Assembly (NCBI GenBank): GCA_900088475.1
Contig: FLMG01002914.1
Coordinates: forward strand, 5,971-69,970
Source: Hyphochytrium catenoides
Lineage: Eukaryota; Protista; Hyphochytriomycota
DNA length: 64,000 bases
Direction: 5' to 3'
Shown: positions 18,383 to 60,453 of the stretch, one piece after another
How the letters are laid out: every line of letters begins with the position of its first letter
Position numbering within the stretch: the first letter of the stretch is position 1
Notes under the pieces: generated by a model
What the model was told of the DNA's origin: nothing
Database searches by the model: none
Seen by the model: only the letters and a program-made list of their open reading frames with translations
Made by a program: the position numbers and the translations under genes

Positions 18383-19984
18383 ATGCGCTGGTTAGCTCTT
18401 ACTCAGAGTCTTTTTCTGGCTACTCTGCTCTACGTTGTCGGCGTAAGCGCCTCGCCAGGGGAAGTTGTTCAATTGGTGGAGAAGGGTCTCAAGAGCTTGT
18501 CATCGAGTTTGCTAGAAGCTGAGGGGCACAGAGTAGTAGATACCCAAGACGCTCACGCCGTGGCGCAGCAGGACGTTTTACCGGCAGAGGTTGCCCCATC
18601 GGCTGCGAAGGGAGCTGATGAGACTGTGACTAAGTTATCGGTGGCAGAAGAGGAAGGAAAGGAAGGAGAAGATGACAAAAGGGGGTCAGCTCTCCAGCAG
18701 GGTGAGGAGCGGAAAGCGCCACTGGTGAACTCTACCGCGGAGGAAGGTCTAGCCGACGTTGATGACTCGTCCTCTACACAGTCCCTTGCGCTTTCAAACG
18801 CTGATGCGACTAATATGTCCACTAACGGGACAAAAGAAGTGTCGCCAACTCCAAAGTTAGCGAAGCCAACCCTGGCCATCAATGACTGGACCCGGTCTGA
18901 CAAACGCCGAATAATCAACAAGAACCCATATCCATTCAAAAAGTTTCAAGACCTTGCCAGGTTCTGCGCCTCCAGTGCATCCGAACACGTCAAGCCAGGC
19001 CATCTTGCATCCTTACGATCGCAGTGCAAGCTCTGGGAGCGCATCGGGACTCGGGATACGCAGACAGAAGAACAGGATGCAGTCAATGGATCTCAGAGCC
19101 CCCTCCGTACACCGGGAAGGCTTGGCTTCCTGCTTGATATCTCTCGGGTGCCCGTCTCGGACGCAAAGTACCTCAATGAGGACCCATTGAACAGCCATGC
19201 AGACGAACGTTGGGGCTCTCATCTCGCCCGCTTATCTGTGAAGTTCCGCAACGACATGCTCAAGGAGACATTTGCAGCGTGGGCAGAGTTTGCAGAGCTT
19301 CACGACATCACTTACTGGCTAGCACACGGCACCCTTCTGAGCTGGCTGTGGAATGAGAACGTCTTTCCCTGGGATGAGGATGGAGATATCCAGACTACTA
19401 ACTATGAGCTGTTGGCACACATTGCCGCTCTCAACGGCTCTGTAGTGCACAACCGTTTCTATTTGGATGTCAACCCAAACATCATCTTCCCGTTCCACCA
19501 AACAGACAACGTCATAGATGCTAGGTTTATCGATACCCACTCAGGTGTCTATCTTGACATCACTGGCCTTAGAATGGACCAAGAGGGCAAGCTTCGGTGT
19601 AAGAGCGTTCACTCCTATAGGCCGGACGACCTATTTCCTCTCCATAGGGCGATATATAGTGGTGTGAAGACGTGGAGACCGCACTTTGTTCAGAAGCTCC
19701 TGGCCCAAGAGTATGGGATCAAGGCCCTTAGTAACGCGGAGTTTGCAGGTTACCGCTTTGATACCTCTGTGCAGGACTGGATACAGGTACATACAGAAAG
19801 CAATGTCATTGACATCCTGAAGAACATTACCAAGGAGTATTACCCCGCAAACTCCGACACTGGCAAGCAGAGTACCCCCGCGGTGTATGTGGATACTTCG
19901 AGGCGTCTCGAAAGTACGACAAACGAAAACGAGACAAAAGGTTCTGGGCACCAGGGCTCGGTTCAAAGGCTAAGGGGGCAGTAG
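18383..19984 (+). CDS. LicD/Mnn4/fukutin-family nucleotidyltransferase-fold phosphotransferase, secretory pathway
   Basis: 533-aa intronless ORF with signal peptide; motifs YWLAHGTLLSW...FPWDEDGDIQ and NVIDARFIDTHSGVYLDITGL. Confidence 0.9.
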   Translation: MRWLALTQSLFLATLLYVVGVSASPGEVVQLVEKGLKSLSSSLLEAEGHRVVDTQDAHAVAQQDVLPAEVAPSAAKGADETVTKLSVAEEEGKEGEDDKRGSALQQGEERKAPLVNSTAEEGLADVDDSSSTQSLALSNADATNMSTNGTKEVSPTPKLAKPTLAINDWTRSDKRRIINKNPYPFKKFQDLARFCASSASEHVKPGHLASLRSQCKLWERIGTRDTQTEEQDAVNGSQSPLRTPGRLGFLLDISRVPVSDAKYLNEDPLNSHADERWGSHLARLSVKFRNDMLKETFAAWAEFAELHDITYWLAHGTLLSWLWNENVFPWDEDGDIQTTNYELLAHIAALNGSVVHNRFYLDVNPNIIFPFHQTDNVIDARFIDTHSGVYLDITGLRMDQEGKLRCKSVHSYRPDDLFPLHRAIYSGVKTWRPHFVQKLLAQEYGIKALSNAEFAGYRFDTSVQDWIQVHTESNVIDILKNITKEYYPANSDTGKQSTPAVYVDTSRRLESTTNENETKGSGHQGSVQRLRGQ

Positions 19985-27960: not shown

Positions 27961-28741
27961 GTCAGTCAAGACTCATAATTATAACTACAAAGGCCTCGTG
28001 CAGGAGGGACTTTTACTGTCTGGAAAGAACCTCATCAATAATAAGATGAGGTCAAAAGGGCACAAAGTTCACAATGGCATTCAGAGACTATCGCCTTTGT
28101 CTCAGAAGAGGGCACTTCTAGCAGTTGACCAAAGTTACCGCGAGAGTATCTTCCACATCAAAAAGTGGGTTTTCCCGTTTTCAGGCGCTTCGCATCCAAA
28201 AAGTGACCAAACTTGAGCGGCACGATCTCTGCTTACGTCTCTGGTTTCCTCTGCTTGCGCGCTCAGTGTAAAGATCTCGTTGTGCTCGTTATGCTCATCT
28301 CCCATCATCACCAGCGGCTTCCTTTAGAAAGAATGACCAAAATTGAGCGGGGTGATTTCTGCTTGGTCTCTGATTCACCTGCTCTTCCCCTACTTCCATC
28401 CTGCTCATCTCCCATCATCGCCGACCACTACCTACTCTTTCTTCTTTTCCTTCGTGTCGTGGCACCATCTCCGAGCTCGGTTGATTCCTTTTCCATCTGC
28501 TGTCTCTCTTCCTTCAACTTGTCACAAAGAGAGAGCATCACAAGGCTATCACAAGGGTATGACGATGGGCTATCGTGCTGCTCCTGCGCTTCTTACCGCA
28601 TCGGCAGATAGTATCAATGATATCAACTCTCTGCTTCCTTGCAAAGTCTTTCTCATAAGCTAATCCGCTGTTAAGAGCTCACCTGTCGCGAAGATCCTAT
28701 CGTTCACTCGGCAAAGTATCTTGCTTCTGTCAACGCTAACG

Positions 28742-29947
28742 ATGGTTAGACTTCTAAGTCAGAGTGTCATCGCCATTGGCACGGTACTTCTCAGCAGCAG
28801 CGGCGGGGACGCCGCTAAAGAAGCAAGAGCGCCAGGCAAATGGACGCTTCTCCCCCTAACCCTGGCTTACAATGCAACCGAACACATGTGCACTTGGGCC
28901 TCATCTTCCTCCTTCGCTTCGAACTCCTCTGTTCCTCATCCACCGGACCGGCACCCAATCGCTCTCATCATCGGAGGCACCCAAAAGTACACTCGCCGGC
29001 CCCTTCGTAGGCTTAATGCCTACGACTTCAACGCTCGGACTGTTACAGAGCTTCGCCCAGCGCCTTTGCAGATGCAGGAAGGCGCTTCTGCAGTGGTCCA
29101 AGATGTTCTCTACATCTATCAACCATCATATTTCAATCAAGGGAGGGTTCCAGGCTATGAGAACACGACGATCCTGACGTATGGGCTAAAGACAAACCAG
29201 TGGGATCAGATTCCTATCTCGGAGACTGCAGTTAGACCTTCACGAGATGCTGCTGGAGGCTTGGTCCAATGGTTTCCAGACAAACGACAGGAAAATTTGT
29301 TGCTTTACCAGTGTGATGGGATCTGGAGCTTTAACCTGAAGAATAAGGAGTGGAAGGCCGTCGAGGTGAAGGGAGACCGCCCTCCTTGTCTCTCGGGTGC
29401 TGCCATCGCGGCTTCTGATGGCAGAGGAGAGGCTCAAGCATTTTACCTCGTCGGAGGTACCACAGAGGACGGCGCAGCTAGCAGCACCGTCTGGAAGTAC
29501 ACCGTCAAGAGCCAGACGTGGTGGCGACTGCAGGCAGAATTTCCTTTGGCCGTGACGAGTCTTTCAGCGGCTGTTGACGGAGACACTCTCTACACTTTTG
29601 GGGGATGGAGGGTATCCGAAAACGCCGCAGTCGATTCTTTCTACAGCCTAAGACTGAACAGGCCTCGCGCGCAGTGGAGAGCGATTCAGGTCTCCCCAGC
29701 ACCTCTGAGAAGATTTGGGAGCTGCATGCTCCCACAAGTCGGACGGGCGACAGAGAGCAACCAAGCGAAGGAAGAGAAGGCCCATGGAGATCAAGGTGTT
29801 TTGCTCTTTGGAGGCATTGAAGAGCCAGTGCCCGGGAAGCCCCGGCACACTGGAGACGATATTTGGGCTTTCTCTGCCGCCACTGACGACTTGACAACGG
29901 ACGGTCAAGAAAGTGATGAGAGGGAGAGCGAGAAGAGAGAGAGTTAG
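28742..29947 (+). CDS. Secreted kelch-repeat (beta-propeller) protein
   Basis: Intronless; signal-like N-terminus; repeats LIIGG, FYLVGG...VWKY..W, LYTFGG...W, LLFGG...DIW. Confidence 0.85.
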   Translation: MVRLLSQSVIAIGTVLLSSSGGDAAKEARAPGKWTLLPLTLAYNATEHMCTWASSSSFASNSSVPHPPDRHPIALIIGGTQKYTRRPLRRLNAYDFNARTVTELRPAPLQMQEGASAVVQDVLYIYQPSYFNQGRVPGYENTTILTYGLKTNQWDQIPISETAVRPSRDAAGGLVQWFPDKRQENLLLYQCDGIWSFNLKNKEWKAVEVKGDRPPCLSGAAIAASDGRGEAQAFYLVGGTTEDGAASSTVWKYTVKSQTWWRLQAEFPLAVTSLSAAVDGDTLYTFGGWRVSENAAVDSFYSLRLNRPRAQWRAIQVSPAPLRRFGSCMLPQVGRATESNQAKEEKAHGDQGVLLFGGIEEPVPGKPRHTGDDIWAFSAATDDLTTDGQESDERESEKRES

Positions 29948-40800: not shown

Positions 40801-42558
40801 CACTGACGCTGAAGGCGGAGTAGGAGAGAAGACCCCTAAACTTAGGAAGGTCAGTCTATGGTGCAGGCTCGGTTATGAACCCAAAGAGGAAAAGGTTATC
40901 AACGGACTCGACTAGGTGACATGAGCAATCCATAGTGGCAAAGCGGAGAGCCAGTACAAAGCGCACCGGACTGGACACTGTCCTGCCTTGCCTCGTTTGG
41001 CTTGTCTTATTACAGATAGTCCTTAATCTCGTCTTATCTTGTCTTAGGCTTATGAAAAGGAACACAAGCAAGGCTCGGTCTCTGCCATCGCGCAGATGGG
41101 TCCTTATGTGCTAATAGCTGTGGGGCCGAAAATTATCGTTCACTCATGGAAGAAAGAACAGCTTGTTCCTTGCGCGTTCTATGACGCTCAAGTAAGTGTT
41201 GAGACCCAGCGACCCGATAGCCACTCAGCGTCTTCTCTTGAATAGGCTCCTTTTGGTCTCCTGAAGGACTAAAAAGTTGATGTTCCTAGATCTATATTTC
41301 CACCATTCGCGTCATCAAGGACTTCGTCATGTATGGAGATGTCATGAAGAGTGTCCATTTCCTTCGCTGGAGGGAAAGAGAGAGAGCTCTTATCTTGCTG
41401 GGTACGTCGACTGTTATGTCTCCCCCTGGGCGTCAGACCTCCTGATCCCTCTGCCGGCCAATGATGAATCTTAGGCAAAGACTACGAGCCGCTCTCTGTC
41501 TTTGGTGCCGACTATCTAGTTGATGACCGCACCCTGGGCCTCCTGGTGGCTGACTCACAGCAGAATATTCAAGTCTTTCATTACGCTCCTAGGAGTGTGG
41601 ACAGTCGAGGAGGGCAAAAGCTACTATGCAGAGCAGACTTTCATCTAGGTAACGTCCATGTTATCTTCTTGGTCCTTATTTGGATTCTTGCCTTCCTTAC
41701 CGTGCCCACACTTTACCTGGACTGTGAAGCAGCTCTGCCTCGGCCGGGGCGCACACGCTTATCAGCCAAGCAACTATCAGCCAAGCAACTACTGGCTTCC
41801 TTTTCTAAAACTTGTTGATTGCACCCGTTGGGTCTCTTTCTTTTGAGGTCTAGGTCTTCATTGACTTGTGAACTAAGTGATAACCAAACTTCCAGGCTCT
41901 TCAGTCGCCAATTTTGTCCGGCATCGAGTGACCCAACTGACGCCAAGGCACAAGAAGAACCGCTACTCTCTTGTTTTTGGAAACCTGGACGGCGGGCTAG
42001 GCGCCTTCATCCCTCTACCTGAGGGCATCTACCGTCGTCTATTCACCCTGCAGACAATCATGGTCAACGCACTGCCGCACAACGGAGGTAAGAGACAGGA
42101 CGACTAAAGGTTCAAAGAGTTAGCGTATACCGCAATAGCTGACTATTCCTCCCATATGGTCGCTATCGCTCCTTAACAGGGATGAACCCCAGGGCATATC
42201 GTCAGTTCAAGCCTCGGACTTACCTATTCCGGCACCTCAGAAGGTTTGCAGTTGCTGCTGCCTCTACTTGCCGCAAGGATCTAGTTTTTTCTGCGTGCTT
42301 TTCTCCTAGTTGCCTGGAGTTTGAACACCTTTGGCCTCACCTTCACTTGTTCAGTCTACGGGTTCTAAGCCGGTGCCTGCGCCCTATCCTAATGCCATCA
42401 TTCCTGTTGACAGGAACGTGATCGATGGGGAAGTAGTTTGGCGGTTTGTTACTTTGGACCGTCAATCGCAGCAAGAGCTGGCCTCGGCCATTGGCACCAC
42501 TCCTGATACGATCATACAGAATCTTCTAGAAATAGACCTCAGTCTAGGGTTCCTGTAA
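31818..42558 (+). CDS. CPSF1: Cleavage and polyadenylation specificity factor 160 kDa subunit, about 30 exons
   Basis: N-terminus MSDQYLCYRQLQPPTGVE...LIVAKANRLEVY; internal SLHNFE, VDPDHRCA, GYLEPTLMILH, VFLGSTVGDCML, GYGKNGAV, GEDEASRGRI, GDVMKSVHFL, LLCRADFHLG; C-terminus IIQNLLEIDLSLGFL. Confidence 0.93.
34585..34787 (+). repeat. 103-bp tandem duplication of a CPSF1 intron 3' end plus exon start
   Basis: Two copies offset by 103 bp, each containing ...ATCTCCAG|ACGCCAATCAACAAG (AG at 34651-2 and 34754-5). Confidence 0.9.
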
Positions 42559-42977
42559 GTGACAGACCAGTCGAGGCTAACTATATCTTGGTTCCGGAAG
42601 TCGTGCCTCTGGAAGGAACTTCGGGACAAGGGCTAACGCTGCTGAAGACTTTAAACAAGACCAACAAGGGTGGTGACCCTTCAATAGCTCTGAAGAGGCA
42701 GCAAGTAGTCATACGAGTGATCTCTTCCCCATATATTATAGAAGGAGTCTTGTTGGAGACTACTGAGGAGCCTCACTCAACTCAGCAGAAATCTTCGTAC
42801 CCTCGGGCCCTCTCTTATTAACAACTCTATCAGCAAGCTGAAGCATTCCTACACAGCGAAAGGGAAAGCTTTCTTCCTCCGTTGTGCTATCTCCGTTGTG
42901 CTATAGCGGCGAGACCCGTGTGCTGAATGGCTGCTTCTCAGGGTAGGCGAACCCAAATATAAATAATAAATAGGACG

Positions 42978-45941
42978 TTAGCTAAGCAGTCTGAGCCCTG
43001 CCTTTGTTCTGTCTGTGACCGTTGCACAATTTATGCTGGCTTTTTCTGCCTGGTGGGCCGGCTGGCTACACTGTGTGATGGGCACCAAGCTGTCAGTCTT
43101 CGCCTGCAGCTCAATGAGCTTTTGTTTTGCCTGGACGAGAGCTTCCTCTGCTCGGCTCTTCTGGTCTAGAAGCCTCTGCATCTCCTCTTCGACCGTCTCC
43201 CTCCAACCTTCTGTCATTTCTCTCAAACTTTGTCTGACGGCAGCAGACAAAGGTCCTGCCTCCGCGAAGTCCGCTCCCTCTTCACCTCCCTTCTGTTCGT
43301 CTTGTCTGCCGTTAAGCGCACGGGAGACTTGCTCATAGTAAAGTTGCTCCTCGAATGGCACAGATGCCCTTGATTGCCTCAGCGCAGCGTGGAAATGCCT
43401 CCAATGGAGCTCATGTATGGCCCCATTTTTACCTTCGTATGCCATCTCCTCTCCTTCCTCTTCCCGCAAGCATTCTCGTACTGCTAGCCTGCAGACCGCT
43501 TCAAGGTCAGCCCCACTATAGCCAGCCGTCTGCCTAACTATACGCTCTAGACTGACCCCTGAAGAAACAGGAGCGTTCCTAAGCTTCGCAAGCAAGATAT
43601 CTCTTCTGCTCTGAACATCTGGAAGAGGTATAAGGACAAGTTGGCCCAGCCTGCCGGGCCGCAGCAGGGCAGGGTCGATCATGTCTGGCCGGTTGGTGGC
43701 TCCGATAACGAAAACTCTACGGTTTCTCCTGTCGACCGTGACTCCGTCCATTTCAGTCAGTAGCTGATTCAGGACAGTATTTGAATGGGCCGAGGAGGCA
43801 TTGGCTGAGCGCGATGGTGCGAGAGCATCCAATTCATCAAAGAAAATAATGCATGGCGAGGCTTGTCGGGCTAGGGAGAAGAGCTCCCGCACAGCTCTCT
43901 CACTCTCGCCATAGTACTTAGAAAGAAGTTCAGGACCTCTGACAGAAAGAAAGTTGGCTCGCTTCTCTGTGGCCAGCGCCTTGGCTAGAAGCGTCTTTCC
44001 GCATCCAGGAGGGCCATACAGAAGGACCCCTAGTTCTGGTGCAAGACCCAAGGATTTGTACCGGGATGAGAAAGGAATGAGCTCCCTTAGCTCTTTCTTG
44101 ACAGCCTCAAGGCCTCCAATGTCCGACCACAGCACCTTTGGGACCTCTAGGTTTAGGCTCTTCTCTCTCAAAGACGATGGACCCACAGTACCCAGTGCCT
44201 CCTCGATGTCTTTGTTCGTTATCTGAAGCGAGCGCAAGGCTTCCTCTCTCCTCTTTAGCGCCTCCGCATCTACTCTTACCCCCTTCCTGGCTATAGTCAT
44301 TTGATTCCTCCTTAGTTCGTTACCTCGTCCTACCAGGGAGCTATCTATATGTATTGAGTCTGCTTCCACCGGCACGTCCATCACCTCGGCGATACTTGTC
44401 CTCTTCATAGCAGCCAGAGCCGCTTCAAGACACACAGCCTCTATATCGGCACCGACGAAGCCTTGTGTTGCAATTGAAAGCCTATCCAGGTTGACTTCTT
44501 CAGACAGCCGCATCCTTCGAGTGTGCACCTAGTCGTACGGAGTGAGGAAGCCTGCGTCGTCAGTGCTTGCATAGAGAGGAGCGAAATGTATAGCGCAAAG
44601 CGCGAAGCACGCAACCGAAGAATTAACCGACATTCTTACAAAGTTGGGAATGCTGGGAAAGGTAGCTGTCATACCTCGAAGATCTCTCTCCGCTCTGCTT
44701 CGTCCGGGATCGTAAGGACAATTCTCTGATCTAGACGGCCTGCTCTCAGTAAAGATGGATGGACTTCAGATACAGCAGAAGAGATTGCAAGTACAACTAT
44801 CTGGCTTCCGTACTCCTCTTTCCTGAAGCCGTCCAGAATGGCCGATAGAGCCGCAGCCGTGTTGGTGGGAATGTCATTCCTCCTCGGGGCAAGGACCTCT
44901 AGGTTTTCTATCAATATCACAGATGGAGCCTGCTTGATAGCCCTCCTAAATATGGCTCGAAGCATTTCCACCCCCGAAACATCTGGAAAGCGGCAAAGGA
45001 GCCGTAAGAGGGCGATGCGATGGAGCATGATCAGACACCTCAGACACAGAGAAGCTTGGCGCACGTGGCAGGCGAAAGGCACAGCTAGAGCGGACAGATC
45101 GTATGCACAAAAGACAAACATCTATGATAGGAGGGAATGACAGGCGCCTAGCCAGGAGGCTCGGGAGCCATCTGCTTGGCAGAAGAATAACCTAGCAACG
45201 AAAAGGAGACGAACCAAGACCCATCGGCCTAAGAGGGAATCTAATAAGTTGTTAAACACTGTCGAAAGAAGCCGTCGTACCTGTTGGCACTTCGCAAGGG
45301 TCAATTCTAAGGCATTTTGCTCTCAAATGGTTGATCACCGTCTCCGCTAACAATGTCTTGCCAACCCCTGAAGGCCCGGAGACTAGAATGCCGCGAGGTG
45401 GACGTGCTCCCAGGGTGCTAAATAGTCTTGGATGGCGGAGGAGGAGCTTGAGGAGAGAGAGAAGTTTGAGGGTGGCCTCCCTCATTCCGCCGATAGAAGA
45501 GAAAAGAGTGGCGGTTCTCCCATCTGGACGAAGCTGAGCACTGCTTCGGTCTACTTGCTCAGCTGCGTCAAGCTGTTGCCAGTAGTGACCAATGACCTGG
45601 GAGAGCTTAGAGTTCTGGTCTCGTAGTGGAACCAAGTCCGCCGGAAGCATTCGCCGCTTGTGCGCAGGACAAAGTTTGGTTGTTTCAAGCAGTTGAGAAA
45701 TGCAGGGGCGGCAGAAAATCTTCTCATTGCTGTGGCAACAGACCACTGGATCCCGCGGTAAGCTGCCACACAGAAAACAATTTAGAAAGGCCGGCCATGG
45801 CGCTAGGTCCCGCCGTACCGGGGGTGCCCGAGACGCACTTTCGACAAATGGCCCATTGGGGAATGCAACCCTATCTCCGTCCACAGAGTGAGCGACGTCT
45901 GAGGTACTCCTGGCTCTGCCTGACTCGGTTTCAGGAGGCAT
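42978..45941 (-). CDS. Cdc48/VCP-type double AAA+ ATPase with an N-terminal RING-like zinc finger; exons 45941-45281, 44982-44675, 44528-42978 (839 aa)
   Basis: CFLC..PRDPVVCCH...IFCRPCI......LCPAH; D1 GPSGVGKT with degenerate Walker B ILIENLE and LLRAGRLD; D2 GPPGCGKT, LLSKYYGESE, IIFFDELD, ATNRPDMIDPALLRPGRL; C-terminal coiled coil. Two GT-AG introns keep the frame (661+308+1551=2520 nt). Confidence 0.88.
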
Positions 45942-46863: not shown

Positions 46864-47332
46864 TTAGGCAAGAGACCATAGCTGGTCAGGATCCTTGGGG
46901 TCACATGGCCAGGCATGGACGATGGTCCCCTCCTTTAGGGTGNNNNNNNNNNNNNNNNNNNNNNTCAATGGCCCTGCTGTTGTCAATGCACCAGTTCTTG
47001 TTGTAGCTCCATGCAAAACTTTTCGCGGTAGCATTGTAAGTCCACTGCTGGTCAATGGAGGAGTCCCGGCAAGCCTTCAGCACTACTTCATTGCCACAGA
47101 AGAGGGTACCGTCCTTGTTCTTAGCCAACCCATGCTGATTGTCCACGCACCATCGTGTGTCCTTAGCCCACAAAATCCGCTTGCCTGGAGCTGGGGCTGG
47201 TGCAGGATTTTCGTCTCCCTCATCCTGCAGATATCGTCTTAGAGATCCGTCAGCGGCATAGGATCCCGTGGTCAGACCACATAAAATGATAAAAGCAAGG
47301 AAGACGACAATCCTGCGTGGGCTAAACTCCAT
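46864..47332 (-). CDS. Small secreted ricin-B (QxW) lectin-like protein spanning an assembly gap
   Basis: Signal MEFSPRRIVVFLAFIILCGLTTGSYA; WCVDN...VVLKAC..SIDQQW, WCIDN, and after the Ns GTIVHAWPC..DPDQLW*. The frame differs across the Ns, so the gap length is probably mis-estimated. Confidence 0.8.
46943..46964. other. Assembly gap (22 N)
   Basis: Direct reading. Confidence 1.
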
Positions 47333-48349
47333 CGTCGTCAAGCTGGGCGAGATCACGACTAAGAAATTAAGATGCCTTCCCTTCAAATCTTGGCTCGTTC
47401 ACTGTCGCGAACGGCGCTAATGTGTGCTTGTTTTACTAGTTGCCGGCAAAAGTGAGAATGAAAGACCACCTAACCCTTGAAGTGCCGTTGGTGATCATCA
47501 AGGTACACCCTTAGACCTTCAGGCAAACAGTCGTGAGATGAATGCGACTGGGACAGAGCGGAAAGGAGAGGTGCTTAGCGCCATATGTGGAGAAGTGAAA
47601 AAGACTATGGTAGGACACTCTGTGCGACCACAAGGCCTCCAAATATCACAACCGAAGGAGTTGGGCTGCGCCCGAATGAGTCAGTTGTTATTTCAGCCAG
47701 AAGGCTTTCAGATGGTCCTCATCGCGGGAGTAGAGCCCGGGCTGTCATTGCGTCGAGTCTACTACTGCAGGTGCTTCGCTCCACTCAAATGGACCTCATT
47801 GGTCTCTTATACTACTAGACAACAATGCGTTCCTTGTTGGCAGACCCTGATCTATGTCACAGTAGTCGGGCTTCATCCTGCTGAAGAATGTACGGCACCT
47901 GGCTGCAACGGCCAAGGCAGAGCTCCCAGAGCGAATAGGTAGTGTCACAGAAGAGCAGGATTCGCAAACGATGAGGAAACTAACAAAGGATGGGAAGACG
48001 CCCTTCGTTTCTGCAGCGATTCCTTACTACGTCCAATCAACGACCATCGTCCTACCATTAACGTCATACGCGCGACGCAGGTTGATTTCCCTTCATCAAC
48101 TGCTGGGATGAGAGGCCCTGCCACACTGCTGCACCTCCATCTTTCTTAAGCAACGACGGAAGGTTACCACCCTCTGTCTCCTGGGGCACCATAAGGCGCA
48201 GAGCTTTGTGTGTCTCTTCCCTTACCTTGGCCCTTAGAGCCCATCCTCCACAATGATCAGCAGTCTCGCTCTTCCGTGGGGTTACATTGAGGGATAGACT
48301 TGCCTCCCTATTCCTTTGACCTCAACGAACGCTAACATCCAACACCATT

Positions 48350-55697: not shown

Positions 55698-56699
55698 AAG
55701 CGCGAGAGTTTGAACAGCGGACAGACGCAACCCTGGCAACCTCAAGAAGCGGCACTCTGGAGATGTCTATTTGGCAAGCGTCGCCTAAGCCTGAACAGGC
55801 GAGAGAGAGAGGTGTGGCGGCGGTGGTGGGCAGAGGTGCAGCAGGTGAAGGCTTCATGCAGACGAGCTGTCTTTCAGGAAGGAGGAAGATCAGGGGGATG
55901 ATGGAGCCCACTTTCTCATAAGGACCCAACCCGAATTTGCAAAAGTTACTTTCGGTAAACCAGTTGTTAGATTCCTCAGGGAGGAAGGGTAGACTGGCTG
56001 TTTGCTACACCTGGACAAAGGCATGGACTTAACGGTGACCGAAAATTGACGAGTCATTGGAATGATTGGTAAGAATTACCCACTAATTTACGGTTTCTAC
56101 CAATTGATGGGCTGGGCAAAAAGGAACCACCCCCCTCCTAGACTCCTAGTGGTGAAGCTATCAAGAAGCGTGTGAGTCTGCCTTCCCCATCCCATCACTG
56201 ATATCTACCGCCTCACGTCGACATCTACCCGACGTGTAACCTCCCACCCTCAAGGAGCCTCCTTATTAGCTCTTCCAACGCCCATGGACTGGACCTGACA
56301 TAACTCGCCCACCCATCCGAAGGTTACGAATTACTTTGAACCAGCTGACGTTGCTGTCACTCTCTCCCTTCATGGCTGCTGCTGGTGCAGCACTAGCCCC
56401 GGGGGAGAGCAGCTCCTCTTCTCAAGCCTGCAACTGCTCTGCCTGCCGCGGGGCGGGGGCGGCAGCTGAGAGCTCCGTCAGCCCTGATGATGGCCCATTG
56501 GCCTCCCTCTCCTAATGTCGCTCCATCCCTGAGGACACAGGCAGCCATCCGGGCATTTTGCATATTTCCCCTCACTCACCCATTCACAGGAGCAGCAATA
56601 GCTAGGGAAGACCTACCACCCACACCATTTCATAGCAGGAATTAGTCTCAACACCTATCCGCCCGTCAGCAACCTACAGTCAAGTGCAGGTTGCTCACC

Positions 56700-57728
56700 A
56701 TGGCCAATAGCCCTCGAGTATATGAAACGGAAGGGCCGACTGGCTTCAACTTCTTCGGGTTCCTGGGACACATCCTAGGCTCCAAGGGGTCAACGGGTTT
56801 TAGCTCTGCATCAACTGCAGAGGAGGTGGCAGCCACCTGGGATGGCAAGGGAAAAGTTGCGGTGGTTACTGGAGCATCGGCTGGCTTGGGCAAAGAATCT
56901 TCTCGGGTGCTGGCCTCGAGAGGTTGCGAAGTCATTCTTGCGTGCAGATCGGTAACTAAAGGGCAAGAAGCTGCCGATGAGATCAAGGCGCGGCACCCTG
57001 AGGCCAAGCTTAGTGTTATGGAGCTCGACCTTGCCTCGCTCGAGTCCGTCAAGAAGTTTAGTACGGCCTTCAAGAAGACGGGAAAGCGTTTGAACATTCT
57101 GCTCTGTAATGCGGGTGTGATGGCTTGCCCTTACGACCTCAGCTCCGACGACCATGAGATGCAGTTTGCAACCAATCACTTGGGCCACTTCTTCCTAACC
57201 AAGCTGCTAATGGGAACTCTTATTGAGTCTGCGAAGCAATCTAAACAGCGGAGCCGGGTGGTGGTGGTCTCCTCTGTGGCTCACTATATGACATATGGGA
57301 AGGGCGCGGGCGGACCCATCCGGTTAGAGAGCATGAACCAGAAAGAGAACTATCACTACTGGTCGGCTTACGGGCAGAGCAAGCTGTGTAACATTCTGTT
57401 CACTAGAGAGCTACACAAGCGTGGACCTCAGGAGCATATTTTAGCTGTCACTCTACATCCTGGGGCCGTAGTGACAGAGCTCCAGCGTCACCTCAATCCC
57501 AGCAACAGTTTCCTGTTAAGCGCTGGGCGCCTTGCCGTTCGCCCGTTCTTTAAGACCATTCCCCAAGGAGCCGCCACTCAAGTCCTTCTTGCGACGGCTG
57601 AGGGCGTGAAAGGTGGAGAGTACTATACTGACTGCAATATTAGCGCATCCAGCGCCGCGGCACATGACGCTGAGCTGGGTGAAAAGCTCTGGGAGCTGAG
57701 CGAGAGGCTGGTTGCTGCCTATGAATAG
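56700..57728 (+). CDS. Short-chain dehydrogenase/reductase, retinol dehydrogenase/Tic32/WWOX-like
   Basis: Intronless; TGASAGLG, NAG, QFATNHLGHF, VVVVSS, catalytic YGQSK, LHPGAV. Confidence 0.92.
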   Translation: MANSPRVYETEGPTGFNFFGFLGHILGSKGSTGFSSASTAEEVAATWDGKGKVAVVTGASAGLGKESSRVLASRGCEVILACRSVTKGQEAADEIKARHPEAKLSVMELDLASLESVKKFSTAFKKTGKRLNILLCNAGVMACPYDLSSDDHEMQFATNHLGHFFLTKLLMGTLIESAKQSKQRSRVVVVSSVAHYMTYGKGAGGPIRLESMNQKENYHYWSAYGQSKLCNILFTRELHKRGPQEHILAVTLHPGAVVTELQRHLNPSNSFLLSAGRLAVRPFFKTIPQGAATQVLLATAEGVKGGEYYTDCNISASSAAAHDAELGEKLWELSERLVAAYE

Positions 57729-58496: not shown

Positions 58497-58920
58497 ATGG
58501 GGTTGCGCGGCAGCAGTGCGGGGTGGGAGAGCCGAGCTGCACAGTTTCAGCCAATCGGCGCGCCGCGCTGTCAGACCCTTGTGGCGGCTCTCTAGCGCTC
58601 TCCAGGTACAGTTCTATGAAGAGAGAGAATGATAGTCCATCTCTAGCGCTGCTGCAGAGGCTTGTGACTGACTGTTTCGCTCTTATCAAGGGGCAAGAAG
58701 ACGGAAGCTGCAGTTTGTTAACGTCTACAGAGTAGGACGCTAGAGAGCAAAAAGAGACTCGTTCTTGACCAGCCACTATTGTAAGCTTGCCGAGACACAT
58801 TCATTTAAAGTTGTCCTACCTTGGGGTAGTGGCGCTCTGGTGCTTTTCAGGGGCAAAGTCTGGGACGCTATCAGCGAGCAGAAGCGCTAGCTGAGGTCTG
58901 ACTTGGTAGCGCTTCTGGCT

Positions 58921-60453
58921 ATGACAACTGCGACTGTGTTTAGAGGCAGTTCGGAGATGGATGGTGAGGTCTATCCAGACGCCCAGCTGCGAGATCGTCT
59001 ATCTCAGCTGCGAGTCAAGTTAACCAGCCAGAACCTCACACCGCCTCGAACCAGGCAGCAGGAAAGGCGCTCAGTACCATATGTAGAGACCGCAATGAGG
59101 GGTCCCATTGTACAGGATCAGCGCTATTCGGCCCCAGCCCAACCTTTCCCACAAGCAGCGACCGACTATGGCAGCGGCGGGGCCGCAGTAACCTATTCGC
59201 CAGTCCGAACGAATTATGGCCAGGACAGCGCCCCTAGGTCGGATGCTAGGCGCCACCAGGGCTTCAGGTACAGTTCCTCAGCAATAGGAGAGAGTGCCTG
59301 GGAGAGAAGAGGCTCCGACATGGGGAGCAATTCGAAGCTTGGCTGGGCAAACGACAATGGCGCCTGGGAGCCTCAGGAAGTATTAGGCAATCAGTGGACA
59401 GCCAAGCCTGGGCGCCCCAAACAGTTAGAGGAGGAGTACAATCCTGACTCGGAGTATCATCGAGCTCTAACGGGACCGATCCGTCACTACAGCAGCACAG
59501 AGGATGTGGACATCGACATTGATGCAGAAAGACTCCACAGGGATCCGAACAGGGGATACATCGATGCCCGACAGTGCAGAGTGATTTGGAGAGACGGACA
59601 GCTAGGTCTCGGGTTAGAGGAGAGACGAGTGGCAGGGAACATCGTCATCCGAGTGAGCAAGTTTCACTCAGAGTCCGTTGGCTCTCACAGCAAGGATTTG
59701 CAGCGCCTTTCGGTGGGTGATGTCCTGGTAGAGATCAACGGACAATCTGTCACCGGACAGAGGCTCCGACAGGTTGCACAACTCCTGCAAAACATTCGTA
59801 GGCCGGTGGAACTTGGCTTCATTGCCACCGCTCTTTTTGATGACAGTGCTGATCAGCATGAGGCTGCCCTCCTTCGGAACCCGCAGCGACATTTACCGAC
59901 TGCTGGGGGACTGGCTCCGGCCTCTTTATCAAGCCGCAGTTCAGGGAGCCCCATGAGCTGGCAAACGTCAAACTTCTCTGAAGGAGAGCCCGAGATCATA
60001 GAGCAGCAGCGTGTGGGCGGCCTCTATCAGATCTATTGGGAGAATCCACCCAAACCGTTGGGACTAATTTTCAAGAAGGGTCCAGGCGGTCGCGTGGTGG
60101 TTGCTAGAATTCCAAACGCAAATTTGCAGCCAGGAGCGAACTTAGCGGAAGTCGGAGACACATTGGAGCGTGTGGGAGAAGTATCATGCCGTCACCTCGG
60201 CCTTGAAGAGTGCGTTGAACTACTTAGAGCTGCGCGAGGACCAACGGTCTTAGAGCTGTGCCACATTAGTGACCAGCAGGAGCCCAATCGCTATGGAGCC
60301 ACAGAGCAGCCGACCACCATCCCACGTCCCGCGCTTCTGACTACTCGACAGCTCGGTAGCAGTAGTCGGCGGGGCCCCACGCCGCCCAGCCCACCGCTTC
60401 CGCCTCCAACAGCTGCCATTCAGCGTGCTGGAGCGCTGAGAGGATATTTTTAG
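58921..60453 (+). CDS. Protein with two PDZ-like domains
   Basis: Intronless; GQLGLGL...LSVGDVLVEINGQSV...RPVELGF and KPLGLIF...AEVGDTLERVGEVS...GPTVLEL. Confidence 0.85.
   Translation: MTTATVFRGSSEMDGEVYPDAQLRDRLSQLRVKLTSQNLTPPRTRQQERRSVPYVETAMRGPIVQDQRYSAPAQPFPQAATDYGSGGAAVTYSPVRTNYGQDSAPRSDARRHQGFRYSSSAIGESAWERRGSDMGSNSKLGWANDNGAWEPQEVLGNQWTAKPGRPKQLEEEYNPDSEYHRALTGPIRHYSSTEDVDIDIDAERLHRDPNRGYIDARQCRVIWRDGQLGLGLEERRVAGNIVIRVSKFHSESVGSHSKDLQRLSVGDVLVEINGQSVTGQRLRQVAQLLQNIRRPVELGFIATALFDDSADQHEAALLRNPQRHLPTAGGLAPASLSSRSSGSPMSWQTSNFSEGEPEIIEQQRVGGLYQIYWENPPKPLGLIFKKGPGGRVVVARIPNANLQPGANLAEVGDTLERVGEVSCRHLGLEECVELLRAARGPTVLELCHISDQQEPNRYGATEQPTTIPRPALLTTRQLGSSSRRGPTPPSPPLPPPTAAIQRAGALRGYF

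Follow-up and report, generated by a model that had tools for sequence, protein, structure and literature searches.

The 64,000-nucleotide (nt) stretch of Hyphochytrium catenoides DNA considered here (the window; contig FLMG01002914.1, positions 5,971 to 69,970) encodes, on its reverse strand at 42978..45941, a protein that joins a RING-like zinc finger to a Cdc48-type tandem AAA ATPase. Judged by its sequence, the gene is a genuine, lineage-restricted paralogue of Cdc48/p97. Canonical Cdc48/p97 obtains its clients from separate E3 ubiquitin ligases through adaptors on its N domain and tail; the window protein has lost both of these sites and bears a ligase-type finger in the position of the N domain. 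The gene consists of three exons, which encode in order a leader, the finger, a helix, a first AAA module (D1) with degenerate catalytic motifs, a second AAA module (D2) with intact ones, and a C-terminal tail. Its D2 falls within the eukaryotic Cdc48 clade, and an orthologue with the same finger is found in a choanoflagellate. The protein is a re-headed Cdc48 paralogue, so far present in two eukaryotes.

Gene structure and placement among AAA families

The gene model was rebuilt from the window sequence, and its junctions were checked by alignment to Cdc48-type proteins. From ATG to stop (42978..45941; all features of this gene lie on the minus strand) it comprises three exons with a coding sequence of 2520 nt, which specifies 839 amino acids (aa) and contains a single, terminal stop. 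Exon 1 (45281..45941) encodes aa 1-220 and the first base of codon 221, ending at the donor CAG/GTACGA. It is one open reading frame (ORF) that covers the leader, the RING-like finger and the helix and extends into D1 to include its Walker A motif, and positions 1-31 of the Pfam AAA profile match it at aa 185-215. Intron 1 (44983..45280) is 298 nt long, runs from GTACGA to CCAG with the acceptor ..TTTCCAG/, and has a C+T content of 64%. Exon 2 (44675..44982; aa 221-323) encodes the middle of D1, matches AAA profile positions 44-129 (E 1.2e-10) and ends at the donor GAG/GTATGA. It is followed by the 146-nt intron 2 (44529..44674; GTATGA..CTAG), whose acceptor ..GACTAG/ opens exon 3 (42978..44528; aa 324-839 and the stop), encoding the D1 lid, the linker, D2 and the tail, with matches to AAA (E 7.7e-45) and AAA_lid_3 (E 9.6e-24). 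Both introns are of the GT..AG type. The AAA profile is thus spanned once across exons 1-2 and again within exon 3, and AAA_lid_3 matches twice. Alignment to canonical Cdc48 is continuous across the first junction save for a two-residue gap, and the second junction (..IFEV/HTRRM..) matches Cdc48 ..ILAIHTRNM.. without a gap. The three-exon, 839-aa model put forward in the initial annotation therefore stands, with canonical introns and with both junctions collinear with homologues. Since one uninterrupted exon encodes both the finger (aa 55-94) and the Walker A motif of D1 (aa 189-196), their fusion does not depend on any splice.

An additional upstream exon supplying a CDC48_N domain was considered and rejected. 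An in-frame TGA lies nine codons 5' of the ATG, the M-P-P start of the window protein aligns with M16-A-P-P of the choanoflagellate orthologue (P0121), and the ORFs upstream do not look like coding sequence. In exon 1, Pfam scans returned neither CDC48_N nor CDC48_2. A different kind of uncertainty concerns an optional block of 37 codons in the D1-D2 linker (44223..44333; codons 389-425, 111 nt), which is in frame, contains no stop and is missing from P0121 and from canonical Cdc48 in the alignment. Its borders, CTG/GTAGGA...CTTCAG/AT, resemble splice sites, and its donor has the GTAnGA shape of both accepted donors. Against an intron stand its composition (70% purine, compared with 61-64% pyrimidine in introns 1 and 2), an in-frame codon score that lies at the 16th percentile of exon windows and thus inside the exon range, and the presence of insertions at the same linker site in an NVL-type protein (P0239) and in the metagenomic protein P0211. 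It is possible, but on the unlikely side, that the block is an unspliced in-frame intron; its removal would shorten the protein to 802 aa and alter nothing else.

The two AAA modules differ markedly in the state of their motifs. D1 begins at about aa 147 and retains its Walker A motif (GPSGVGKT, 45354..45377, aa 189-196) and both arginine fingers, R300 and R303. At the Walker B position (V-I-L-I-E-N, 44903..44920, aa 242-247) the D-E pair is replaced by E246-N247, and the sensor-1 Asn is lost (S289). The catalytic Glu is absent from P0121 as well, which carries IIVLDQ at this position and Leu at the second arginine finger; the earlier view of D1 as a module with an intact Walker A, a degenerate Walker B and probably no hydrolytic activity is consistent with these residues. 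That annotation had also pointed to the missing aromatic pore loop of D1. The D1 pore-loop region (VPTDVSGVE) indeed contains no aromatic residue, yet canonical Cdc48 D1 (SKMAGDSE in P0209) is equally non-aromatic; on sequence comparison, the non-aromatic loop is no departure in itself, and it is the decay of the whole motif that is special.

D2, with its lid (43323..44135, aa 455-725), has kept every catalytic motif, as the initial annotation had noted: Walker A GPPGCGKT (495-502), the pore loop K527-Y-Y-G530, Walker B D554-E555, sensor-1 N602 and the arginine fingers R613 and R616 within R613-P-G-R616. Behind it follows a lineage-specific C-terminal tail of 114 residues (42981..43322, aa 726-839). 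The tail ends in ..GLRLLS and has no HbYX motif at its C-terminus, compared with ..DIYA in P0209. A coiled coil had been proposed in place of HbYX; the loss of HbYX holds, and the coiled coil reduces to a short heptad helix (43116..43199, about aa 767-794) of roughly four heptads, in which six of eight a/d positions are hydrophobic.

The family to which the tandem AAA part belongs was addressed with structure searches and trees. Among Protein Data Bank (PDB) entries, D2 scores highest against p97/VCP (465 bits), followed by archaeal VAT (450), yeast Cdc48 (428), NVL (411), SPATA5 (410), Afg2 (404), AFG2B (327) and Rix7 (325), and the start of D1 aligns best, among solved structures, to p97 residues 203-270. 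A D2 tree of 79 sequences was built with IQ-TREE under LG+C20+F+G4, with clade labels taken from PDB searches of representatives: P0209 for canonical Cdc48 (1099 bits to Arabidopsis CDC48A), P0190 for AFG2/SPATA5 and P0239 for NVL; PEX1/PEX6 and NSF are unlabelled in this set. The window D2 lies within the eukaryotic Cdc48 clade (support 99/93), which includes P0209 and a Giardia homologue, just outside a core of 12 sequences (95/86). This placement supports the proposed Cdc48-type nature of the protein. CDC48_N was matched at E <=0.01 in eight of the ten clade members whose N-termini were scanned, five of them above the Pfam cut-off and three below. In the D1 tree the window protein and P0121 form a pair (95/96) on a long stem, with no further placement. 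Such a pattern is expected if an inactive ring evolves fast, although long-branch attraction can likewise draw two such sequences together. A homologue search with exon 3 was swamped by archaeal Cdc48 proteins, because a single query domain can score against each of their two domains, and the window's own protein was not listed there.

It is very improbable that the protein is instead a divergent member of another type II AAA family (AFG2/SPATA5, NVL/Rix7 or PEX1/PEX6) that happens to bear a zinc finger. Such an origin would agree with the combination of a degenerate D1 and an active D2, which is the PEX1/PEX6 pattern, and with the insertion that NVL likewise has at the D1-D2 linker site. The D2 grouping with eukaryotic Cdc48, the leading p97 score and a region after D2 that is collinear with p97 all speak against it. 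Membership in each family was rejected separately: the AFG2/SPATA5/Drg1 clade closes without the window protein at 100/96 (D2) and 97/98 (D1), the NVL/Rix7 clade does so at 100/97 (D2), and for PEX1/PEX6 there is no PEX chain among the best 60 PDB matches of D2 (weakest listed, 285 bits) and no Pfam match to a PEX N-domain.

The N-terminal finger and its orthologue

Behind an unconserved leader of about 45 aa, the Cys/His core of the finger extends from C55 to H94 (45660..45779) and reads C55-x2-C58-x9-C68-C69-H70-x6-C77-x2-C80-x10-C91-x2-H94, which gives eight candidate zinc ligands with an x6 spacing between ligands 4 and 5 and a His as the last ligand. Characteristic elements include DPV before ligand 3 (DPV-V-C68-C69-H70), F-C77-x2-C80-I at the start of the helix, and C91-P-A-H94. 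All residues that had been cited for an atypical RING-HC-like motif at the N-domain position of Cdc48 are thus present. Five Pfam families of the RING clan (zf-RING_6, zf-RING_2, zf-C3HC4_2, zf-C3HC4_3 and zf-C3HC4) match the same residues in register, with per-query E-values of 0.003-0.3. A strict RING regular expression does not match the finger, and a loosened version does. Language-model neighbours point in the same direction: nearly all of the named Atlas clusters closest to aa 46-112 of the window protein and to aa 47-112 of P0121 are of the C3HC4 RING type (0.93), with 180 and 176 shared features, respectively; one cluster of TRIM37 fragments and one without a common Pfam family are also listed. 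At the positions through which RING E3 ligases usually face the ubiquitin-conjugating enzyme (E2), the window protein has residues that look suitable for this contact: L57 behind C55, L84 within the helix, P92 behind C91 and K95 behind the final ligand.

Structure prediction suggests a folded RING/U-box-like domain at aa 49-101 (45639..45797), with a core predicted local distance difference test score (pLDDT) of 70-80 in AlphaFold2 (AF2). For aa 46-112 the best AF2 model has a pLDDT of 63.4, with blocks at 78-80 arranged in the order strand, strand, helix, strand. When this model was compared with known structures by Foldseek, all 50 of the listed PDB matches were RING or U-box domains, including 3lrq, Bmi1/PCGF, Prp19, RNF168, Rad18, RNF8 and TRIM69, at probabilities mostly of 0.8-0.99 with two lower. 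The same was true of all 30 listed Swiss-Prot matches, among them NRDP1, RNF5/185, PCGF, BMI1, BRCA1 and PRP19. In VIA-align the Prp19 U-box ranks highest (Z 6.2; 1.8 Å over 49 of 58 residues, a full-length match for a domain of 50 residues), ahead of the TRAF6 RING (Z 5.0) and a peroxisomal RING peroxin (Z 4.7), and ZZ and B-box cross-brace fingers come just below. Taken together, the models and their structural neighbours indicate that the N-terminal domain probably adopts a RING/U-box fold. Directly behind the finger, a P-x-D-x-x-P-L-R-D-x-N motif and a helical linker lead to D1 (45504..45638, aa 102-146); a long helix is predicted here by AF2 with low confidence.

The finger is not unique to the window. 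When 1.84 billion cluster representatives were scanned exhaustively by HMMER with exon 1 as the query, exactly one protein proved to match the finger as well, namely P0121, a 522-aa ORF from a transcript assembly of the choanoflagellate Salpingoeca urceolata (EukProt EP00051_P020626). It is collinear with aa 39-553 of the window protein (515 residues, 37% identity, E 6e-101) and displays the finger, the PLRDxN helix, a dead D1 and the start of D2 in the same order, its sequence ending within D2. C55, C58, C68, C77, C80 and C91 are conserved in it, as is an invariant finger core of W49, P50, F52, L57, L61-P62, P65-V66, I81 and P92; behind the core, P100, D102, P105-L-R-D108, N110 and H119-Y120 are shared as well. 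By this comparison zinc site 1 (ligands 1, 2, 5 and 6) is conserved, and site 2 is complete in the window protein only. The finger is not a chance pattern, because it shares one ORF with the D1 Walker A motif, and because six Cys residues and the surrounding hydrophobic residues have been conserved at 37% identity.

Further relatives were sought by several routes. With region 36-150 of P0121 as the query only P0121 itself was recovered, and an N-domain profile built from the two sequences had no match up to E 10. Of two metagenome scans, one contained no relative and the other yielded only generic AAA matches to aa 93-178. An exact look-up of the P0121 contig found nothing on record, none of 270 fetched AAA proteins matched a RING regular expression, and a six-frame scan of the window revealed no other RING. 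The fusion is lineage-restricted and very sparse: among the cluster representatives searched, it is represented by this genome and one choanoflagellate transcript.

Two further sets of proteins were noticed during these searches. The metagenomic proteins P0211 and P0271 represent another Cdc48-clade paralogue without CDC48_N and without a finger, with IIFIDQ at the D1 Walker B position, a D1-D2 linker lengthened by an insertion, and a tail that is long, acidic and helical; a run rich in Cys and Arg within D1 suggests that the gene caller translated through an intron there. Cdc48 paralogues that have been re-headed and whose D1 is dead may be commoner than this one family. The P0175 cluster comprises 1172-aa bacterial proteins from Endozoicomonas that are nested within the eukaryotic Cdc48 clade of the D2 tree, at 99/89 with P0209, and may result from gene transfer from a eukaryote to its symbiont.

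Authenticity of the gene and possible activity of the finger

DNA contigs from two sequencing runs of the same organism confirm the sequence with few differing sites. Between isolates, about 9 of the 2520 exon nt are variant (~0.36%), against four single nucleotide polymorphisms and one 1-nt indel in the 298 nt of intron 1 (1.7%) and 7 differences in 160 nt of the upstream flank (~4%); variants are thus 5-12 times sparser in the coding parts than in the intron and the flank. The sole 1-nt indel inside the gene falls within intron 1, and a second one lies just upstream of the ATG. A 393-nt contig from a soil metagenome (window 42900-43289) is ~97% identical to the 3' end of the gene and carries an in-frame 24-nt deletion at 43053, in the tail. 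A 155-nt piece with six differences also appears in a 2024 run filed under another organism label. Together, the soil contig and this piece indicate that close relatives of the organism occur in soil.

A gene model artefact or a decaying pseudogene, with the 839-aa protein not made as drawn, is improbable, and this alternative has some observations in its favour. The sequencing runs listed for the stretch are DNA runs and two weak matches, with no RNA run and no spliced form among them, and the window's own protein appears in neither of the protein libraries searched. Of the ten sites at which the coding sequence differs between isolates, seven change the amino acid, one of these changes being P100T at a conserved residue, which suggests that constraint may be weak and that selection on the coding parts is not demonstrably strong; the 111-nt linker block, moreover, is perhaps an unrecognised intron. 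These points count against a functional gene. They are opposed by a 2.5-kb open frame over three exons with canonical splice sites, by the collinearity with Cdc48 homologues that is restored at both junctions, by the retention of every D2 catalytic motif, by the low variant density of the exons, by the in-frame nature of the tail deletion in the soil relative and, most strongly, by the occurrence of the same fusion in an orthologue derived from a transcript.

If the gene is read as a functional Cdc48 paralogue, a working mechanism can be proposed from its domains. The protein would most likely form a double-ring hexamer, as do type II AAA proteins. D1, with its Walker A motif and both arginine fingers, would bind ATP and, because it lacks the Walker B Glu and the sensor-1 Asn, would not hydrolyze it, acting as a static assembly ring, while D2 would pull and translocate the substrate via its Tyr-Tyr pore loop. 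The head would consist of the zinc finger of RING/U-box fold and its conserved helix in place of the double-psi-barrel N domain, and the tail of a short coiled-coil-like helix in place of the HbYX tail. Lacking both the N domain and the HbYX tail, the protein would be unable to use the UBX, SHP, VIM, Ufd1-Npl4 and PUB/PUL cofactors. Cut off from these canonical partners, it would have its clients chosen by the finger, its helix or the tail. Six fingers atop the ring could then recruit ubiquitin-charged E2 (E2~Ub), and ubiquitination and D2-driven extraction would take place on the same particle.

Ligase activity of the finger is plausible, and the favoured reading, although it falls short of probable, is that the finger recruits E2~Ub and that tagging and pulling are coupled. 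The self-contained ubiquitin ligase/segregase proposed in the initial annotation is thus a plausible hypothesis. The most far-reaching version, in which six active RINGs on the entry face of the unfoldase allow one hexamer to ubiquitinate a client (or itself) and to extract it independently of the Ufd1-Npl4/UBX/PUB network, is rather unlikely.

Several observations weigh against a catalytic finger, and some also against the fold itself. On the modelling side, AF2 gave an unusable result for aa 40-145 (pLDDT 51, from a two-sequence input), and the other four of the five models of aa 46-112 were poor. Foldseek E-values for the finger model are 0.02-0.16 overall and 0.03-0.16 for the PDB matches, and all of its VIA-align Z values are below 8, a range in which, by the tool's own caution, a match can reflect a common arrangement. 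With regard to sequence, the x6 spacing between His4 and Cys5 is unlike the classic RING pattern, where it is x2-3. No RING profile reaches its gathering score on the finger: zf-RING_6 attains 17.8 of 35 bits and zf-RING_2 17.3 of 27.3, while the remaining three families score 11-12 bits, also below cut-off. In this respect the proposal of an N-terminal RING/U-box domain fared unevenly, being favoured by the predicted fold in AF2, Foldseek and VIA-align and not by Pfam scores. Furthermore, the finger of P0121 has no Pfam match at all. H70 and H94 (ligands 4 and 8) are missing from the orthologue (..A-C-R-S.. and C-P-K-F), and Gly stands there at the position of K95, the Lys after the last ligand. 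As read from the alignment, neither the second zinc site nor a residue that activates E2~Ub is conserved in P0121, and the activity may not be conserved either. Finally, partner RINGs of the BARD1 and Bmi1/PCGF types, which have little activity by themselves, are among the best fold and profile matches.

These features could also belong to a protein of the same architecture whose finger is a non-catalytic, RING-like module for docking or dimerisation with a partner RING, a cofactor or a client. This alternative is a real possibility, if not a probable one. It would account for the loss of ligands and of the Lys in the orthologue, for the BARD1-type RING as the best Pfam family, and for the many Bmi1/PCGF partner RINGs and zinc-free U-boxes among the top folds. 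The set of residues that has been conserved (zinc site 1, C68, C91, the hydrophobic core and the PLRDxN helix) would also fit a structural or interaction role. On the other side, the window protein possesses all eight ligands and what are presumably suitable residues at the usual E2-contact positions. In addition, half-RINGs (such as Pex12) and zinc-free U-boxes exist, and U-boxes entirely without zinc are active E3 ligases, so the loss of ligands in P0121 is no proof of inactivity and decides the question of activity in neither direction.

The significance of the protein depends on which of these readings applies. An active finger would make it a natural single-chain coupling of ubiquitination and extraction, a compact model for the coordination of both steps and a model for the effect that clustering of RINGs on a hexamer has on their activity. 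If tagging and pulling are indeed coupled, the gene would represent a Rosetta-stone fusion of two steps that are kept on separate proteins in all studied eukaryotes. An inactive finger would still show that an unrelated domain can serve as a new head for the Cdc48 motor, with D1 decaying to a ring for assembly, a path similar to that taken independently by PEX1/PEX6 and NSF. Until more members or a function turn up, the protein is of limited reach and a curiosity.

Neighbouring features and comparison with known systems

The surroundings of the gene contain several further ORFs. A convergent neighbour at 41877-42558 (+) stops about 420 nt short of the AAA gene's 3' end; one of its exon-like ORFs matches Pfam CPSF_A (E 3e-7), and its last ORF resembles, by eye, a C-terminus of the CPSF160/DDB1/SF3B3 type. 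Upstream, an ORF at 46901-47386 (-), interrupted by a 22-base masked run of N (46943-46964), encodes a hydrophobic leader and Q-x-W-like repeats that suggest, by eye, a ricin-B-type lectin, with no Pfam match. Other long ORFs on the plus strand, at 18383-19984, 28721-29947, 56691-57728 and 58903-60453, match LicD (E 6e-17), Kelch repeats (E 1e-22), short-chain dehydrogenase (E 4e-31) and PDZ (E 6e-8), respectively, and none is evidently linked with the AAA gene. Scans of the window for Rfam families and tRNAs gave no match.

Among known systems, Cdc48/p97 itself is the closest. Both proteins contain tandem classical AAA modules with D1 and D2 lids, the window D2 is ~50% identical to that of Cdc48, and the RPGRLxQL..IPLPD motifs and the helix after D2 are collinear with p97. 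The window protein differs in having the RING-like finger and helix instead of CDC48_N and CDC48_2, and in its D1, where Walker B reads E-N rather than D-E, the sensor-1 Asn is lost and the pore-loop motif has decayed. It is also four residues short at the start of D2, lacks HbYX and possibly carries the 37-aa linker insertion.

A division of labour between the two rings is known from NSF D2 and PEX1/6 D1, which serve as non-hydrolysing assembly rings. The window protein would share with PEX1/PEX6 and NSF the principle that one ring binds nucleotide without hydrolysis for assembly while the other is the motor. It differs from them in that their N domains are double-psi barrels and their sequences are more distant, and PEX1/PEX6 act downstream of separate RING peroxins.

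With RING and U-box E3 ligases (Prp19, TRAF6, NRDP1, RNF5/185, Bmi1/PCGF and BRCA1/BARD1) the finger shares a predicted beta-beta-alpha cross-brace fold and the DPV, F-C-x2-C-I and C-P elements. A helix after the finger is also present in the BRCA1/BARD1 and Ring1b/Bmi1 types. It departs from these ligases in scoring under the Pfam cut-offs, in the x6 between ligands 4 and 5, in the His as last ligand and in being joined to an unfoldase.

Full-text searches of the literature brought up no paper on a RING fused to a tandem AAA protein of the Cdc48 type, in agreement with the initial annotation, which had not recognised the architecture as a described family; the only RING and AAA+ protein to surface was RNF213 (mysterin). 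RNF213 combines a RING and AAA+ modules in a single chain, and the title of the paper describing it announces a distinct mechanism of ubiquitin transfer (PMC7311170). RNF213 is nevertheless of another kind: at ~590 kDa, it contains six dynein-like AAA+ units that form a ring within one chain and is not a hexameric type II unfoldase. Its RING, moreover, lies C-terminal to the AAA core, whereas the finger of the window protein precedes D1, and no homology between the two is suggested beyond their domain classes.

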